NCBI GenBank assembly: GCA_965202585.1
Contig: OZ241827.1
Coordinates: forward strand, 27,466,001 to 27,530,000
DNA: 64,000 nucleotides
Reading direction: 5' to 3'
Origin: Thalia democratica
Taxonomy: Eukaryota
Position 1 is the stretch's first letter, and the number at the start of each line of letters is the position of its first letter. Shown piece by piece: positions 2,321 to 31,915 of this stretch. The notes below the pieces were generated by a model. It was not told the DNA's origin, made no database searches, and saw only the letters and a list, made by a program, of their open reading frames with translations. Both the position numbers and the translations under genes were made by a program.

Positions 2321-5300
2321 GTAATTTTGTTTTTAATAGTTTTCTCGAAAAACTTTAATCTTTTATATAAACTTTAATAAAGCATAACTTTTTTAACTTT
2401 ATTGTTAAAAAAAACTCAACTCTATAAGTTTTCATTGCTTGAGCTAAACTTTTGAAACATATTTTTGGACACTTTTCTAACCTTATATAAAAGTTATGAT
2501 AGTTTTTTTTCTTTATACTTAGTAAAGTAAACAATTATTTGAAATTTTAGTACTTATGTTTACATAAACAATAGCAAAAGGCTTTATAACCAAGTCAAAA
2601 TATTCAAAATCCTTTTATTTCACTACTTTTAAAATTTGAGTAGTATAAAACAACTCATGGAATATTATATACACTTTTTTGTATGCACTTTTGATTGCCC
2701 TAACTTTAAAAAAAAAATACTTCACAGCAGTTCTTTGACAAATACAAACTGTTGTTTATGAGATATTTTTGTTATGATGCATATTTTCTTAACTGTGTCT
2801 AGAAATTTGAAAGTACTTGAAAACTTACGTCTTACTTCATAAGTGGTTTATTTTAGTTTTAAGTCGATTATAGATAATTATTATAAACTTATTGTTTAAA
2901 AATAGTAAACTTGAACTATATTTACAACAATACTTTATAAATATGATGTCCTTAATAATCTTGAATAACTTTAAGTATGTTTATCTTAAAGTTTATCTAT
3001 TTTTATGCAATTCTCTTGACTTTCTTTTTGGTTTAAACTACTTTTTAATTGTAAGTATACAACAATATCCTAAATTTTTCAATACAACATAACATTTAAT
3101 TTGATACAGTTGTTTTTTGGAGATTCTATACCATATAGTTTTACCAGTTTGTCCGTCACTTTCTTATAAAAATATAAATCAAAAGTCAAATATTATAAAC
3201 TGTAAGTTTGTAATCACTTTAAAGGGATTAAATGTATTTTTCCATAAGGAGGTAACAAACACGAGTTGAAGAACAACTTAAACACATATATTTATTAGTG
3301 TATATACTGAAAATAGTTTTAAGCTTTAAATACAATAAAACATAATTTTGATTTTAAACATAAAACATTTTGTATGAAGAAAAAATACATCAAAACAAAG
3401 CTTTTTTTGCTTATTATTCAATTTACACATAAAAAAATGTTTTTTTTTTATTCTTAAAGTTGTAAGTATAATCTCAATTTAAAATTTACTATAAACATAG
3501 TCTTTATTAAATCAAAATGAAAACTTTTTTTATTTTTATATTAATTAAACTAATCTTGAAATAAAAAGTGTTAAAAATTTCATAATTATTAACTACTTAT
3601 TTTTGTCTGATATTTTTTTTGTATTTTTTTGTTTTTATTTAAAATTGCTACACTTTTGTTTAACTTTAGGCCATATATTTCAGTTATTTTTTCTTAAATG
3701 TTTTGAAATGTTTATTGTTTACCAAATACCACGGTTAATGATCCTTTTAAATATTAAAAAAATGTAGAAATATTCAAAATTACTATATTACTACAGATAG
3801 TATATGCCTCTCAACAACTTAAATACGATTTTACAGTATTTTAAAACGTTTTTAAAATACGTGGATTATTTTTATCATTGCATAGTACAATATAGTCAAC
3901 TATTAACTACATTTTTTTGGTTTTTCTTCTTCTTTACTTTCTTTAAAGTTTATCTAGTTTTTGTTATCATAAAAAACTATAATTTAAAACTATAAACAGA
4001 CTTATAGTTATTAAAATTTGCAAGTTTAGAAAGCTAAATTAGGAAATGATAAAAAGTCCTTTTAAAATACAATTTTTATTAAGTATCTAGAATATACAAT
4101 TTAAAATAAAATTGAATTCAAAAAAATGTTTGTTTTACAAAGCTAATAATTTAAATTAATACTTATAATTTTCATTTAATTTTACAAAAATTAAATATTT
4201 TAATTAACGTACTTTTATGCTACTTCAATTAAACTAAGACTTTCATATCTTATCTATATTATGGTTATTTTTTCTAAGATTTAAAACTTTAAAAATCAAT
4301 TACTTTTAAAATGTAAAAGTTTTTTATAGATGTAGTATTTTTAGATTTTTAGCTTTTTGTCTTTTTTTGAATACCTTAAATTGACTTTTAAAACTGAATT
4401 ACTTTAATTTTCAGGCAATTTGAAGTATTTTGATAATTGATAAAGCATGTTTTTTTCTATTTGGCTAAATTTTTTTTTTTTAAGCAACTTCGTTATATAT
4501 CTAAACTTCATCAAAAATACAAAAACAACAACAAATTTTGCTTAGCAATTTCTAGCTTAGTGTTTTTGCTTTTTTCACATTTTATTAGCTCAGTAAAACT
4601 CGGTTGTAAACGTTGAAACTTGCCTTGAACACAATTACAAAAGTTTCGCTTCCGTTTTGTTTTTAAAAGCTGTTGTTTTATTTTGAAGTTTATCCTATAA
4701 GTTTAGGAATTTATTTTAAGCACATGACTGGTTTAAACTGTTGCCCTCTTAATATATATATGTGTAGCAGAACAAAAACACCATTGTTAGTTATGCGCTA
4801 CATCATAACGTAATCAACAATGTACGCAATCGCCGCGACAGCAAAACAACTTTCAAGTAAAATATTTTGCATACGAAGAGTATTAAAACTAATTAATTTT
4901 GGATATCAAGAGTATGCAATTAGTTTTACTTTGTTTTATAAAATTCTTTTATTTATCAGTGGAAGGTGTTAGATTGCAGTTTGATAATAACTTTTTAAAC
5001 TTGTTTTAGATTGATATTAAGTTTAACCTTAAAGTTTTGTCAATAATAAACAGATATGGGTTAGACCATCAAAACCCGCCGAAAAACTGATCAATACTTC
5101 TGAAATATGTTATGCTGAAGTGAAAACGTTCTGGTGATGATACAACCTGCAAATTAGGAGTAAGGCTGCTCCTCACATTTCGTGGTCATGATTTGTCGGT
5201 GTTTTCCTTTCAAGTTTCGAAGGAATATCTTAACTTTTCGCACCGAAGTATTTTCAATGCGGTCTGAAAACCCATCTGAATTTTTTAAAGACAATTGAAC

Positions 5301-27200: not shown

Positions 27201-29588
27201 AGTGGGTAGATACATCCTGGAAATAAAAAACAGAAGTTCCTTGACCTTTAAATGTAAACAAAACTAGACAAACACTAAAAGTAAACTGGACATGAACGAT
27301 ATATAGGCGCGAATGCAAATAAATAGAAAAGGTCAAATAAAAGGTTTACAGGCTTAACACTGTGTTTATCAACTAAAAGCGCTATAAAATAATCACTGCT
27401 ACACGTGTTTGCAGATTCAGAATCTGCATAGGTATTTTAAGGTTTCATATTTTTTACTCATAGTTCAAGTGAATTTGAAAGTCAAAAATAACCTAATTGT
27501 TTGCAATTATCTTTGTATGACGTATTTGCTTAACGTCACAAATTTGATATGTCAAAATGTATGCTATTGTTGCTTATTCAAAACTTCCGCTGTTTTGAAT
27601 TAAATAAACAAAAATTTATGTTAAACAATTTTTTAACGACTTACTTTGTGCGTAAAGAAATACAATGTCAATTTTGTTTAACTTTGAAGTATAATAAATT
27701 TATTTTAGTCTAAAGCTTACATATTGGGAAACTTTCTTTTGCAAGTAAATATTAAAGTTTTATAATGATCAAATTAGTTTACAACTTCCATGCAAATCTA
27801 AATACTTTATATTACTGTTTCAAACAAATGAAAAAATTAGGAAATTTTTCAGTGCAGTGTTAATAAATTATTTATGTTTATAACTTACTTCTTTGTCAAA
27901 CTTTATAACTTGCATGTCTGCATTTTAAAGTACCTCGTGTTATTTTTGCACGGGATAACTTTGTTAAATAAGGTATATCGACTAAGATATAACTATTATT
28001 TATAGAAAACTTTAACTAGTTACTTTAATAACACATTTAACTTAAGTTTCCTTCTAAAAATAAAAATGTAAAAAAGTTTATTTAAAACCTGTTATAACTT
28101 TAAAAGCAAATAACAAATTTATTACGAACTTGGCTTTATAAATTATCTTTAAGATTCCTTTTAATCTCAATGGAGGTGTCAGTTTTACAAGTTTTGATCT
28201 GTGATTAGCATAAGTATTTTTATTCCAAAAACTTAATAACACAAGTGTTCGTTTTTAATTTTATTTTAGTCTAAACAATTATTTCGAAAAAAAATGTTTT
28301 TATTTTATTTTTAAGTTAACAAGAAGATATATATTCAAGCTTATAAGGATTATAAAATAAAAAATGTTGTTAAAAAGGTGTGTACTAAATAAAACTATTG
28401 TTTCGATCGGAAGTTTTGTTTTATTTTTAAAGTCTGTTTTCGTTTTACAGATATTTCTGTACTAGCGTTTACGCTTTTATGTTTTATTTCCAAGTATTAA
28501 AAATAGTACATGTTTATTACACATTTATTAAAGAAGATGATCTTGGTATAAATATTTACTTTAAAGGAGTGCACATATGTAGATTAGTACTAAATGACGT
28601 GATATGTCTTTACCACATAATTATGTTCTACTTTTTAGTTTTAAGTTCTAAACTTCTAATAACTAAAATTCGAAAATACTTTACTATAATCTTTTTCAAA
28701 TTTTAATCATTTTTAAAAATGGTAAACAATTTTTATTTTATTTAATTTGTGTTTTTTTTTGTACAACAACTGCTTAAAAATATACTTTTAAAATATTAAA
28801 CTAACTTTTATCAAGTTTTTTGATAAAAACTAACATATACTTAGATTTGCACATTTATATAGTTTTAAATTAATTCTAAAATCGTAAAAACTCTTTGCAG
28901 TAAAAGTTTGGTGATTTAAGTTACACAGTACTGTTGTAAAATAGTATAGTTATGGTGAATGAAAAATATTATTATTTTCTTTTATTTTACAAACCTTATA
29001 TATACTAATTGCTTTTGTTTTGAAAAAAAAAGTTATATTGTTCGAAACTGCAACAAACATCTATGATATATTTTTAAGAAATTTTAATATTTCTACAATA
29101 AAATTGTCTGTATAATGTTTTGTATTAGTGTTTTAATTAAGTAAAATGCTGATATGTTCTTTCTTGTACTCTACTACATGGAGGTTAAAAGCAGGAAAAA
29201 TTATAATTTGTTTCAAACAACTACAACGCAATACTTTTAATATGATGACCTCTGTATAGTATAAAAATTCTAGATAATTCTATAAGTGTACCATTTAAAT
29301 TAATGTGCCTATATTTCTAAAAATTATTGTAATTTTCCTTAAAAACGCACTTTTACTACTTAATGAATACAGCTCTTAGAAAAAATAAAAGCTTAAGACA
29401 TAGCAAAAACACTTTTAGACATAAGTTTTATCGCAAAAGTAAAGTTGTTAAGGTTTTTTTTTTTGTAATTTTCATGATAACTATCAAACTTAAACTAACT
29501 TGAAAATTTTAAACAAAAGTTTATTTTTATAAATAAAAAGTTTTGTTTTTTTTTTTTTAATTTATACAACCACCTATATAATATATAT

Positions 29589-30386
29589 ATGCCTTTTCTA
29601 GAAAATTTTCTAAAGACAAAAGATGAATATGAAAAAATAATTAAAAAATGCGGATACGATAATAAACTCAAATTTGAAAAACCTGAACAACAGCCAAAAA
29701 ATAATCAAAAACATAAAAGATAAAGAAATGTAATCTGGTACAACCCTCCTTTTAGCAATTCGGTAAAAACTAATATTGGAAGAAAATTTATAAATCTAGT
29801 CAAAAAACACTTCAATAAACAAAATCCGCTAACAGAAGTTTTCAACAAACATAATATGCGAATAAGTTATTCGTGTACGGCAAATTTAGAGAATATCATT
29901 AAGGCACACAACCAAAAAATTTTAAATCAAAACTCAGGAATTCGAAGTCAATGTGGCTGCGCTGGTAGCTGTAAATATAATTTGAAAGGGGGCAATTGCC
30001 GTTCAGAGAACATCGTTTACAAGGCCACAGTTAACTCTGGAGTTGAGACGAGGTTCTATGTCGGCTTATGCTCGACTCAGTTTAGATTCACGTATGCTAA
30101 TCATAAAAAATCTTTTAAAGGCGGCATATATGAAAATGACACTGAACTTTCGAAGTATGTTTGTGGCTTAAAACGCAGCGGCATCGACTTTGAAATATCC
30201 TGGGAAGTTATAAAAAGAGCACAGCCTATAGGTGACGGAAATAGCCCAATATGTAGGCTGTGTCTCAAAGAAGCAATAGCCGTTGTATATGCACTGAATG
30301 ACAAGAGATGTCTAAATAAAAGAAGCGATTTTGTATCGTCTTTTAGACATATAAAAAAATCGCTTTTAAAGTTTAACAAGTTTTAA
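29589..30386 (+). pseudogene. PLE ORF C-terminus (RT thumb end, Cys-rich linker, GIY-YIG endonuclease) with one nonsense codon
   Basis: One continuous frame: ENFLKTKDEYEKIIKKCGY...[26 protein letters not shown]...ISYSCTANLENII...CGCAGSCKYNLKGGNC..NIVYKATV...YVGLCSTQF..YANHKKSF...TELSKYV...CRLCLKE. TAA at 29721-29723 (likely from AAA). The supplied ORF 29856-30386 is the downstream part. Confidence 0.85.
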
Positions 30387-30642
30387 TTTCATCTTAAAAT
30401 AATCTAAATTTCAATTTGTATCTTAATTTTATCTTTATATCTTACAATTATCTGTCCTAATATATAGTTACTCACTGAAGTTTTATGAATTTTTGCCAGT
30501 TTATTGTCGATTGGTAAATTAATTTTTGCACAAGCCGTTTTGCATGATTTTTGATAGTTTCAAAATTACGTCATAATCTATTTATGCTAAATTTTTTAAC
30601 TTTCATTTGTGTGTTTTGATTTGTGCTTTATTTTAAACTTGT

Positions 30643-30687
30643 TTTGAAGCTGATGAGTGCATAGGCACGAAACTCGAGTCCTTTGAG
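30643..30687 (+). ncRNA. Minimal type I hammerhead ribozyme in PLE 3' UTR
   Basis: CTGATGA (30650-30656), stem II GTGC-ATAG-GCAC, GAAA (30669-30672), 2-bp stem III closing the palindromic loop TCGA, GTC cleavage triplet (30678-30680), stem I TTTGAAG/CTTTGAG with G-U pairs. Confidence 0.88.
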
Positions 30688-30711
30688 TTTTACATCTTGA
30701 AATAAACCTTT

Positions 30712-30863
30712 TTATTAATAAAGCCCTTAAGGTGGGCTCAGTGTGAAAGATTTAATTTATCAAATTAAATAACTTAATTGTATATGCATATATATATAGA
30801 ATTAAGTTATTTAACTTAATAAATTAATTTTTTTCACACTGAGCCCACCTTGAGGGCTTTATT

Positions 30864-30868
<5 letters not shown>
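30712..30868. repeat. Tail-to-tail inverted repeat of the PLE 3' end (arms 30712-30779 and 30800-30868)
   Basis: ~68-bp arms with 5 mismatches by eye, separated by a 20-bp TA-rich spacer. Confidence 0.95.

Positions 30869-30899
<31 letters not shown>
30869..30899. repeat. (TA)n microsatellite at the PLE right junction
   Basis: Perfect TA run directly after the inverted arm. Confidence 0.95.
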
Positions 30900-30902
<3 letters not shown>

Positions 30903-31915
30903 GGTGGTTGTTACACTTTTAGTTACTCTAAATTTATAAAGTAAATATGTAAGTGTTATATTCTAGAAAAAAAAATAATCTTTGAAAATGTAAACTACTA
31001 AAAACCAAAAGAAAGAATCTGATATTTTTGCTAACTTTTGCTTTATTTTATTTGTTAGTTATACAAATGAAAGTTTTTTTAATTTATAGAACTAAATTTA
31101 AGAATTTCTTAAGAAGTCACTAGGGCAGAAATATAACAGTTTAAAATACAATTATTAAGAATGTTATAGCTTTGTACATGATTTTTAAACTATACAATGA
31201 ATGACTTTGGAATAACTTGTAAATATTAAAACTAATTGTCAAAACAGCTTATATAAGTTCCAGCATTTAAGATTTTATTTTCAAAAGAATGTATCACTCA
31301 AAAAAAAAATCATCTGTTAACAATAAGCCTTATTCAAAAAGAGTAGATAAGATCTTATTATTAATAGATGTTCACTTTTGTGAGTGAAACATTGTTTTGA
31401 AAAAAAAAATCTTAAAATTTTTGAAGTCATATAATTCTCCTTATCAATAAGTTAAGATTTTTGAATATTAATTTTCAAAACAAAAGTTTTTTTAATAACT
31501 CATAAGTAGAATTTGCTAAAATAATAAACTATTCTGGTTCTGTTTTTTTATGCGCACCTATAAACTCATATTATTGTTTTTTTTTTTAATTTGACTTTGA
31601 GAGTAAAGCTTTTGGTAAAAACGATTATCAGTTAAAAGATTTACTTTGGTTGCAAATATGATATAAATATGCTAATAGATACTTAAAGCATTGAGATTTC
31701 GTATCAATAGTTACATAATCAATAAAGTAGTTTACTCTATACTTGTGTAATTGTAATATTGTTAATTTTCAGTTCTTGATAAATATTACATGTCAAATAA
31801 ACTGAGGTTTTATATGTTAATAAAATTTCTTTATACGCACATCATAGCTAAATCTAAATTATTAGTTTTTTATAAGTTCTAAGTTTTGTACTATTTTCAT
31901 ACGAAATTTTGTATA

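Follow-up and report, generated by a model that had tools for sequence, protein, structure and literature searches.

The integration of Penelope-like elements (PLEs) is still poorly understood. Members of the Hydra clade are smaller than 3 kb, always contain a hammerhead ribozyme and, in almost all families, insert into (TA)n (Craig, Yushenova, Rodriguez and Arkhipova, 2021, PMC8557442). The family described here resembles them in its unit of less than 3 kb with a single ORF for a reverse transcriptase (RT) together with a C-terminal nuclease of the GIY-YIG type, in the canonical hammerhead motif of the pseudo-LTR, in its partial tandems, in the adjacent inverted 5'-truncated copy with a tail at one end only, and in inserting into (TA)n without a recognizable target-site duplication; no family-level difference from the published elements was found (PMC8557442). 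For a PLE protein of the anole, it was observed in vitro that both strands of the target are cut and extended from two internal start sites of reverse transcription, and a dimer was predicted (Frangieh et al., 2024, PMC11167929). The locus presented here lies in a 64-kb stretch of DNA from Thalia democratica, which is referred to as the window throughout.

Inverted retroelement fragments at one site are reportedly also generated by L1 elements, via priming on both strands (twin priming; Ostertag and Kazazian, 2001). In twin priming, the 5' ends meet centrally and a target-site duplication lies outside, whereas at the present locus the 3' ends meet centrally, the arms originate from different source lineages, and the flanking repeat is inverted instead of direct. 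Snap-back templated insertions from polymerase-theta end joining and short template-switch mutations leave sharp-edged inverted copies, about 5-30 nt long, of neighbouring sequence at breaks or stalled forks. Template-switch mutations create perfect hairpins, and a TA tract, being self-complementary, is ideally suited to prime synthesis by folding back. The likeness of these systems to the locus consists in the short, sharp-edged inverted copy, a new making of the flanking 11-mer being putative here.

Layout of the locus

Two 11-mers that are exact reverse complements of each other enclose a TA tract, a long PLE fragment, a second TA tract, a short inverted fragment of the same family, and a third TA tract. 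The individual features are (window coordinates):

29566-29576, plus strand: left 11-mer ACAACCACCTA; single-copy flank DNA, not element sequence
29577-29589, no strand: left TA tract, 13 nt, imperfect; target-microsatellite remnant at the 5' junction of the long fragment
29590-29599, plus strand: a 10-base stretch TGCCTTTTCT at the 5' junction that lacks collinearity with the element
29600-30780, plus strand: Hydra-clade PLE copy with truncated 5' end, element positions 1415-2590 (on a natural full-length copy, 29600-30779 aligns with 1415-2589), with subfamily A states
up to 30386, plus strand: C-terminal ORF remnant of the long fragment, with an in-frame stop at 29721-29723
30716-30780, plus strand: 'tail' of the long fragment, which also has a 3' UTR/pseudo-LTR and an inner 3'-end site at ~30715
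30645-30686, plus strand: type I hammerhead ribozyme motif (Rfam RF00163) inside the 3' UTR/pseudo-LTR
30781-30798, no strand: central TA tract, 18 nt with one GC interruption, separating the two facing 3' ends
30799-30868, minus strand: solo 'tail' module, element positions 2522-2590, from the PLE family of the long fragment; states of subfamily B
30869-30900, no strand: right TA tract, 31 nt of pure TA and an additional T, at the solo tail's 5' junction
30901-30911, minus strand: right 11-mer TAGGTGGTTGT, exact reverse complement of the left 11-mer; single-copy flank

The two fragments are of very unequal length (1.18 kb vs. 70 nt), and mapping on the full-length copy confirmed that their element 3' ends face inward across the central TA tract. 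This had been claimed in the first-pass annotation, whose description of the flanks was likewise borne out: the 11-mers border the TA-bordered PLE fragments, complementarity stops at the next outward base on both sides (T at 29565 vs. T at 30912), and an ordinary target-site duplication is not visible beyond TA, as only TA repeats are common to both sides in direct orientation. The left and central TA tracts add up to 31 nt (13 + 18), and the right tract also measures 31 nt. Joined to the first bases of the element, the ten extra bases TGCCTTTTCT form the palindrome TTTTCTAGAAAA; upstream of the point matching 29600, all 29 other copies (29/29) carry a different sequence that is homologous among themselves. 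Other 5'-truncated copies, e.g. L023, abut TA tracts as well. An Rfam match to the microRNA MIR9555 (30723-30857) was rejected, as it merely reflects the tail-to-tail inverted repeat.

The element family

The element at the locus is a 2.6-kb PLE, assigned to the Hydra clade by its architecture and its target, with RT, C-terminal GIY-YIG nuclease, hammerhead ribozyme and pseudo-LTRs. Its full-length copy, L035, has a unit of 2590 bp and an ORF of about 710 codons, in which the RT motifs FDVVDYYPSI and YRDDG are recognizable by eye. Sequence searches against Pfam-A and the PDB yielded no RT or nuclease match for the family, so that a comparison of predicted folds was needed. Residues 1-127/167 align to the palm and thumb of HIV RT (Z 6.0-6.4), and neighbour clusters in the Atlas carry RVT_1; since Pfam RVT_1 itself gave no match, support for the RT domain is moderate. 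The predicted fold of residues 253-374 corresponds to the catalytic domain of I-TevI (Z 9.0, rmsd 2.5 Å, 90/92 residues) and also to T4 EndoII (Z 7.5) and the GIY-YIG domain of UvrC (Z 6.0). One homologue is labelled 'predicted GIY-YIG superfamily endonuclease' by its source, and the closest named homologue comes from a jellyfish.

The RF00163 match at the locus scores 25.5 bits (E = 0.0074), which is below the gathering score of 34; the hammerhead cores CUGAUGA and GAAA are present, and the motif is also found in the upstream pseudo-LTR of L035. Partial tandems (pseudo-LTRs) exist in L035, L012 and L003. A (TA)n tract directly follows the 3' end in about 25 of 30 copies and also precedes the outer ends of inverted partners. 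All three TA tracts of the locus are present because Hydra-clade PLEs insert into (TA)n (PMC8557442); they represent the known target preference of the clade and nothing peculiar to this site.

Alternative 3' ends and paired fragments

The 3' ends of the fragments fall into two classes, position 2590 (70 fragments) and position ~2525 (33 fragments), and the tail module of 65-70 nt is the segment between them. The short arm of the locus is this module and not a random truncation. Comparable solo tails occur in L036, L038, L039, L057, L062, L075 and L077; the recurring solo tails start at positions 2519-2524 and have TA on their flanks. In the PLE literature examined, no account of solo tails lying within microsatellites was found. 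The distance of 65 nt between the two 3' ends (~2525 and 2590) and the behavior of the intervening segment as an optional tail match the two internal RT start sites of the anole system (PMC11167929). The tail is longer here (~65-70 nt vs. 30-40), and in the anole element the start lies in an AC-rich stem-loop that has no homology to the target, whereas both sites of the present family lie beside TA-like sequence (PMC11167929).

Among adjacent fragment pairs, 46 of 68 are oriented head-to-head. Where both ends are visible, these pairs nearly always (24/26) have one end of each class, 2590 and ~2525; their arms are joined directly without TA and are of similar age, with a median identity difference of 2.3 points. 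The single-event products of this PLE family are head-to-head, with no TA at the joint, and the presence of one end of each kind is expected if both strands are cut and extended (PMC11167929). True tail-to-tail pairs elsewhere (n=6) all contain 16-50 nt of TA between the arms (6/6), which are of unequal age (median identity difference 8.4 points). This invariable separation by TA, together with the unequal ages, fits independent hits.

The locus and about 70 related loci constitute a consistent natural record for one Hydra-clade family, comprising two start sites of reverse transcription about 65 nt apart, single events that lead to head-to-head products, solo tails as minimal products, and TA microsatellites that gather repeated hits. 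The record agrees with the in vitro findings on the anole element and extends them to another clade. Nearly everything at the locus is ordinary behavior of its element family, the exception being the origin of the 11-base inverted repeat.

Separate origins of the two arms

The long fragment shows 95% identity to L002 and L013 and 92-93% to copies of subfamily B, and it carries subfamily A states, sharing all three diagnostic ones (3/3) with L002, L003, L006_1 and L008. The short fragment is 97.5% identical to the tails of L019/L020 and 88-90% to subfamily A tails; its diagnostic states (3/3) are those of the majority subfamily, B. Within the 75 nt common to both arms there are about seven differences, three of them at subfamily-diagnostic sites. 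Because the arms carry the bases of different subfamilies, they are neither copies of each other nor products of one RNA primed twice, nor an assembly fold-back. They derive from separate source lineages and arose independently. The right arm is not a reverse-complement copy of the left one, as a fold-back inverted duplication would produce, and the fold-back synthesis considered in the first-pass annotation is, in the simple form of a copying of the left arm, refuted by the diagnostic bases. A single mirror-symmetric or twin-primed insertion would have used one template and placed the 3' ends beside the flanks; the locus displays neither.

Origin of the inverted 11-mer

The 11-mer has two matches in the 64-kb window, where 0.01 are expected from shuffles and none of 100 shuffles reached two. 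No similarity beyond 11 bp, as expected of a longer, decayed palindrome, was detected around the two copies. Extended by TATA to a 15-mer, it occurs three times in the 800-Mb genome, the other two occurrences being unrelated and not near PLEs. Within the 2590-bp element no match was obtained at up to one mismatch, the 11-mer is missing from all 5' junctions examined within the first 30 loci, and a genome search with a 19-mer at up to two mismatches gave roughly double the number of control matches, with no family joined to TA tracts. Genome-wide, neither the left flank (28700-29576) nor about 350 bp of the right flank recurs; both being single copy, no paralogue or haplotig with an empty site was found, and a metagenome scan with the 20-mer of the left junction gave two unrelated chance matches only. 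A near match at L004 (one mismatch) was discarded, since it falls within an unrelated palindrome and does not exceed chance.

A census of inverted flanks, which covered about 300 kb of mostly PLE-linked loci and is biased accordingly, revealed PLE clusters inside inverted flanks at L013, L062 and L054, the last with an 11-bp inverted repeat around a PLE fragment and TA, and, at L029, an (AT)13 tract free of PLEs whose inverted flank measures 10 bp. The inverted flanks of L013 and L062 are the facing 3' ends of a second PLE family; a candidate 'palindromic MITE with a TA centre' around these and other loci was rejected for the same reason.

Probably, a (TA)n microsatellite that already lay between the 11-bp inverted repeat was struck twice, independently, by the (TA)n-targeting Hydra-clade PLE. 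The original target would have read ACAACCACCTA-(TA)n-TAGGTGGTTGT, with the 11-mers as the original borders of the microsatellite. One event would have delivered the 5'-truncated subfamily A copy of 1.18 kb on the plus strand, with ten filler bases at its 5' junction, and the other the 65-70-nt terminal tail of subfamily B alone on the minus strand. For the solo tail, reverse transcription may have begun at the outer start site (position 2590), with a nick in the TA tract as the primer, and have proceeded to the inner start site (~2522) with its TA-like motif TTATTAATAA, where the nascent end could have paired with TA repeats across the break before being joined. Since each insertion splits the microsatellite, TA would persist at the two outer junctions as well as between the facing 3' ends. 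We infer both that the inverted repeat predates the insertions and that the microhomology step occurred. The reading is consistent with an 11-mer that is beyond chance, absent from the element and not repeated with TA in the genome, and with inverted flanks at other loci, including the PLE-free L029. A sharp-edged, perfect 11-bp inverted repeat nevertheless needs an origin of its own, which the reading does not supply; the analogues at L013, L062, L029 and L049 are imperfect, and the equality of 13 + 18 and 31 nt of TA is not predicted.

The main rival, which is considered unlikely, assigns the right 11-mer to snap-back synthesis tied to the insertion of the solo tail, a narrower version, confined to flank and TA, of the fold-back copying mentioned above. 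With ACAACCACCTA-(TA)n-TACAC... as the target, a nick of the top strand within the TA tract would prime a copy of the 70-nt tail, whose nascent end TTATTAATAA would detach from the RNA and fold back onto the TA tract of the same strand, which is self-complementary, and extension through TA and 11 nt of flank would yield (TA)n and TAGGTGGTTGT, to be end-joined to the right side of the break, with the long copy entering the left TA tract later. Such a course predicts the 31-nt equality, although microsatellite lengths drift and the agreement may be a coincidence. It would also account for an inverted repeat that is sharp-edged and exactly adjoins TA on both sides, and it is in line with the TA-like 3' end of the solo-tail cDNA, with the 11-bp inverted repeat at L054, with the cutting and extension of both strands from two start sites by PLE RT/EN in vitro (PMC11167929), and with the self-priming propensity of PLEs inferred by Arkhipova et al. 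(PMC3846280). On the other hand, none of the other solo tails whose surveyed clusters had both flanks shows an inverted flank, the irregular bases beside the 11-mer differ between the two sides (TATAAT vs. AAATAT), and a set order of events, the loss of the TA tract's right part and a stop after exactly 11 nt are required. If the right 11-mer was made on insertion, the empty site would read ACAACCACCTA-(TA)n followed directly by TACACTTTT, without TAGGTGGTTGT. The inverted 11-mer informs the mechanism of integration only in that case and so far says nothing about it.

A single concerted, mirror-symmetric event, with two cDNAs primed by a PLE dimer acting on both strands of a target that was palindromic or cruciform, is improbable. 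The locus does have a palindromic site, and both-strand cutting and extension as well as a predicted dimer are on record for the anole protein (PMC11167929), but priming on both strands puts the 3' ends beside the flanks and the 5' ends together, whereas here the 3' ends face each other; in addition, the arms belong to different subfamilies and the tail-to-tail pairs elsewhere differ in age. From the corresponding proposal of the first-pass annotation, the palindromic, TA-centred target is retained as the best supported reading, and the two-strand attack in one event is not supported, in view of the head-to-head norm and the different lineages. Tandem and inverted PLE structures are known to trouble assemblies (PMC8557442), but an assembly fold-back or a chimeric read is very improbable here, given that fold-back artefacts give identical arms and these differ at about 7 of 75 positions, that six other loci have the same tail-to-tail layout, and that the flanking DNA is continuous and single copy. 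That the 11-mer is a leader derived from the element, as suggested earlier by its presence at both 5' junctions of the locus, or some other templated addition there, is practically refuted by the three genomic occurrences of the 15-mer, the absence of the 11-mer from the element and from the junctions examined in the first 30 loci, and the lack of a TA-linked family.

A tentative and rather doubtful idea is that integration of (TA)n-targeting PLEs is tied to hairpin or cruciform DNA, by either of two routes. The GIY-YIG nuclease could favor TA tracts in which the hairpin stem is prolonged by the flanks, or an aborted integration at a TA tract could be resolved by snap-back synthesis, through which some 10-11 nt of the flank are copied in inverted form (an 'inverted target-site duplication'). 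The inverted repeats of 10-11 bp at this locus, at L054, at L029 and, more weakly, at L049 would then be footprints of that step. The palindrome of L029 belongs to a repeat with at least four copies, and the inverted repeat of L049 rests on a self-complementary ATCGAT and a TG/CA compound microsatellite.

Structure of the insertion locus

The 11-bp inverted repeat around TA tracts and Penelope-like element (PLE) fragments, reported in the first-pass annotation, is exact at both positions, and the reported lack of an ordinary target-site duplication holds as well, with no direct flank repeat found at the window locus. The structure is real and comprises the following parts:

29566-29576: left 11-mer, ACAACCACCTA
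29577-29589: left TA tract, 13 nt, imperfect
29590-29599: filler of 10 bases, TGCCTTTTCT, foreign to the element at that point
29600-30780, + strand: long element fragment (left arm), 1.18 kb
30645-30686: type I hammerhead motif
30781-30798: central TA tract, 18 nt, between the + and - strand fragments
30799-30868, - strand: short element fragment (right arm), 70 nt
30869-30899: pure TA (31 nt) of the right TA tract, 32 nt in all
30901-30911: exact reverse complement of the left 11-mer

Besides these two, the window contains no occurrence of ACAACCACCTA on either strand; the shuffle mean is 0.01, which rejects a chance pair. The pairing stops sharply at 11 bp, and outward of the 11-mers no similarity was found past this length, so that a relic of a longer palindrome is rejected as well. 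The filler ends in TTTTCT and forms with the first element bases a palindrome (TTTTCTAGAAAA), which may be the footprint of a small fold-back or of microhomology at the 5' junction of the long copy. The left and central TA tracts (13 and 18 nt) add up to 31 nt, the length of the pure TA on the right, a match that may be coincidence. Some 360 bp beyond the locus on its right side, an inverted repeat at 31273-31408 (arms of 55 nt, 82% complementary, loop of 26 nt) looks like a MITE; its family has at least 246 candidate copies.

Identity of the element

Searched against the genome, the region matches more than 2,400 candidate copies, with identities of 91-95%. Other copies extend upstream of the point matching 29600 and are homologous to each other there, hence the long copy in the window is 5'-truncated at this point. 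The full unit measures 2590 bp, with all element mapping referred to one natural copy and not to a consensus. The natural copy at locus L035 consists of a leader (65 nt), an ORF of ~710 codons with one stop, and a 3' UTR (400 nt), with a partial tandem copy (pseudo-LTR) directly upstream. Pfam gives no domain in the ORF, Pfam-A missing both the reverse transcriptase (RT) and the nuclease. A protein model built on 30 homologues shows a C-terminal GIY-YIG nuclease fold (I-TevI, Z 9.0, rmsd 2.5 Å, 90/92 residues; T4 EndoII, Z 7.5), preceded by an RT palm/thumb (Z ~6). The protein family is widespread: most of its more than 1,800 relatives are unnamed, one is a jellyfish protein, and one is named GIY-YIG endonuclease by its source. 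Together with the hammerhead motif and the pseudo-LTR, these folds confirm the earlier assignment of the fragments to PLEs. Hydra-clade PLEs are described as shorter than 3 kb, with a single ORF, RT and C-terminal GIY-YIG domains, a hammerhead ribozyme, pseudo-LTRs, and TA targeting (PMC8557442, Craig et al.); the window element agrees with this clade description in size, ORF, domains, ribozyme, pseudo-LTRs, and targeting, and matches the clade. The window copy carries an in-frame TAA at 29721-29723 in place of the lysine codon of intact copies (KHKR*RNVIW vs KHKRKRNVIW) and is therefore dead.

Insertion patterns of the family

At about 70 loci, nearly all copies are terminated by a variable (TA)n, and the 3' ends of fragments form two classes, one at element position 2590 (70 fragments) and one at ~2525 (33 fragments). 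These positions are 65 nt apart, and the segment they delimit is equivalent to the optional 'tail' of published PLEs, which Frangieh et al. (PMC11167929) traced to a pair of RT start sites, one at either end of it. Neighboring fragments are paired as follows:

Head-to-head (5' ends meet), 46 pairs: direct joint, from a 15-bp overlap to filler of mostly <20 nt, without TA tract
Tandem, 14 pairs
Tail-to-tail (3' ends meet), 8 listed, 6 true: joint always 16-50 nt of TA

Where both ends are visible, 24 of 26 head-to-head pairs have their ends in different classes, one at 2590 and the other at 2525. Their arms differ by a median of 2.3 points in identity, those of tail-to-tail pairs by 8.4 points. 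We read the head-to-head pair as one event with both strands primed, in agreement with an anole PLE protein that cuts and extends both strands in vitro (PMC11167929), and the tail-to-tail pair as separate hits in one microsatellite. Fragments of the tail only (start 2519-2524, end 2590, TA on both sides), termed solo tails, occur at loci L036, L038, L039, L057, L062, L075, and L077. In part these loci were recovered by searching for the pattern of such junctions, and their frequency is therefore no estimate.

Origin of the two arms and of the inverted 11-mer

The short arm covers element positions 2522-2590 and is thus a solo tail, not a random truncation. The 75 nt common to both arms differ at ~7 positions, 3 of them subfamily-diagnostic, where the left arm shows the states of the copies L002, L003, L006_1, and L008, and the right arm those of the majority subfamily. 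The long arm is nearest to L002 and L013 (95%), the short arm to L019, L020, and L012 (97%, versus 88-90% to subfamily A tails, the subfamily of the long arm). These different states and relatives rule out that the left arm was folded back and copied into the right one, or that both were primed on a single RNA, and they make a fold-back error of the assembly very unlikely.

An element-derived leader, also considered previously, fails for the 11-mer: it is absent from the element, ACAACCACCTATATA occurs 3 times in 800 Mb, about the chance expectation, and the other two sites hold no PLE. A looser genome search revealed no TA-linked family, the assembly contains no second allele or paralogue of the locus, and metagenome matches to it were at chance level only. 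As an oddity of a single locus the inverted 11-mer is genuine, and either a pre-existing inverted repeat around a microsatellite or an inverted flank copy from repair or integration remains as its origin.

On balance, we favor two independent TA-targeted insertions into a microsatellite that would have been bordered by the 11-bp inverted repeat before either of them. The solo tail would have been primed at position 2590, and the other break end captured at the TA-like motif TTATTAATAA around position 2522, presumably through microhomology. Known Hydra-clade PLE behavior accounts for most of the locus. The main alternative, clearly less likely, places the inverted copy in the solo-tail event: the nascent TA-like 3' end would have folded in a snap-back onto the TA tract of the same strand and been extended through TA and 11 nt of flank, end joining would have followed, and the long copy would have arrived later. 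The equal TA lengths and the sharp edges of the repeat speak for such a snap-back; against it stand the several special steps that it requires and the other solo tails, which in clusters surveyed with both flanks all lack an inverted flank. One concerted event in mirror image is disfavored, since both-strand priming yields head-to-head products and the arms differ in subfamily; of the palindromic TA target attacked on both strands that had been proposed, the pre-existing inverted repeat is favored and the single attack judged unlikely.

Inverted flanks at other loci

PLE clusters within inverted flanks, which the first-pass annotation suggested looking for, are found elsewhere (L013, L062, L054), while the 11-mer itself does not recur with PLEs. 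At L013 and L062, the flanks consist of 3' ends turned toward each other that belong to a second PLE family with TA tails. A 149-bp repeat (L013:2848-3010; 1,342 candidate copies, 97-98% identity), also present in the flanks of L002, L018, L022, L036, L037, L046, L061, L062, L075, and L078, adjoins TA tracts at many loci, often as inverted pairs around TA. On first impression a palindromic MITE, it is contiguous with a related 'tail' upstream in L046, L075, and L078 and is therefore the 3' UTR end of this second, very young PLE-like family.

L054:1484-1574 shows an inverted repeat of exactly 11 bp (AATAACAGAGT/ACTCTGTTATT) around a TA tract and a short PLE fragment in inverted orientation, with sharp edges as in the window. 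At L029:1036-1081, (AT)13 is enclosed, without any PLE, by an inverted repeat of 10 bp that matches perfectly (TGACCATGAC/GTCATGGTCA); this junction recurs at three further genomic places with one mismatch and thus belongs to a low-copy repeat of at least 4 copies. L049:1333-2006 harbors TTATCGATTGT plus TA twice in direct orientation around a composite insertion (a PLE head-to-head pair and a ~400-bp repeat also in L029), and a third, inverted TTATCGATTGT after (TA)6. With an ATCGAT core and a TG/CA compound microsatellite, it is a weak example of inverted flanks and looks like a direct 11-bp target duplication beside a palindromic TA site. In the reversed-sequence control, flank matches reach at most 9 bp among 137 TA tracts and at most 7 bp among 64 PLE clusters. 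In this genome, TA tracts with inverted flanks are a real and repeated feature, seen in a small and biased sample that is silent on their order relative to PLE activity. A satellite with ~17-bp units (GATCAAAATCCACCCGC-like) adjoins PLE ends at L027, L030, and L035, in the last just past position 4739.
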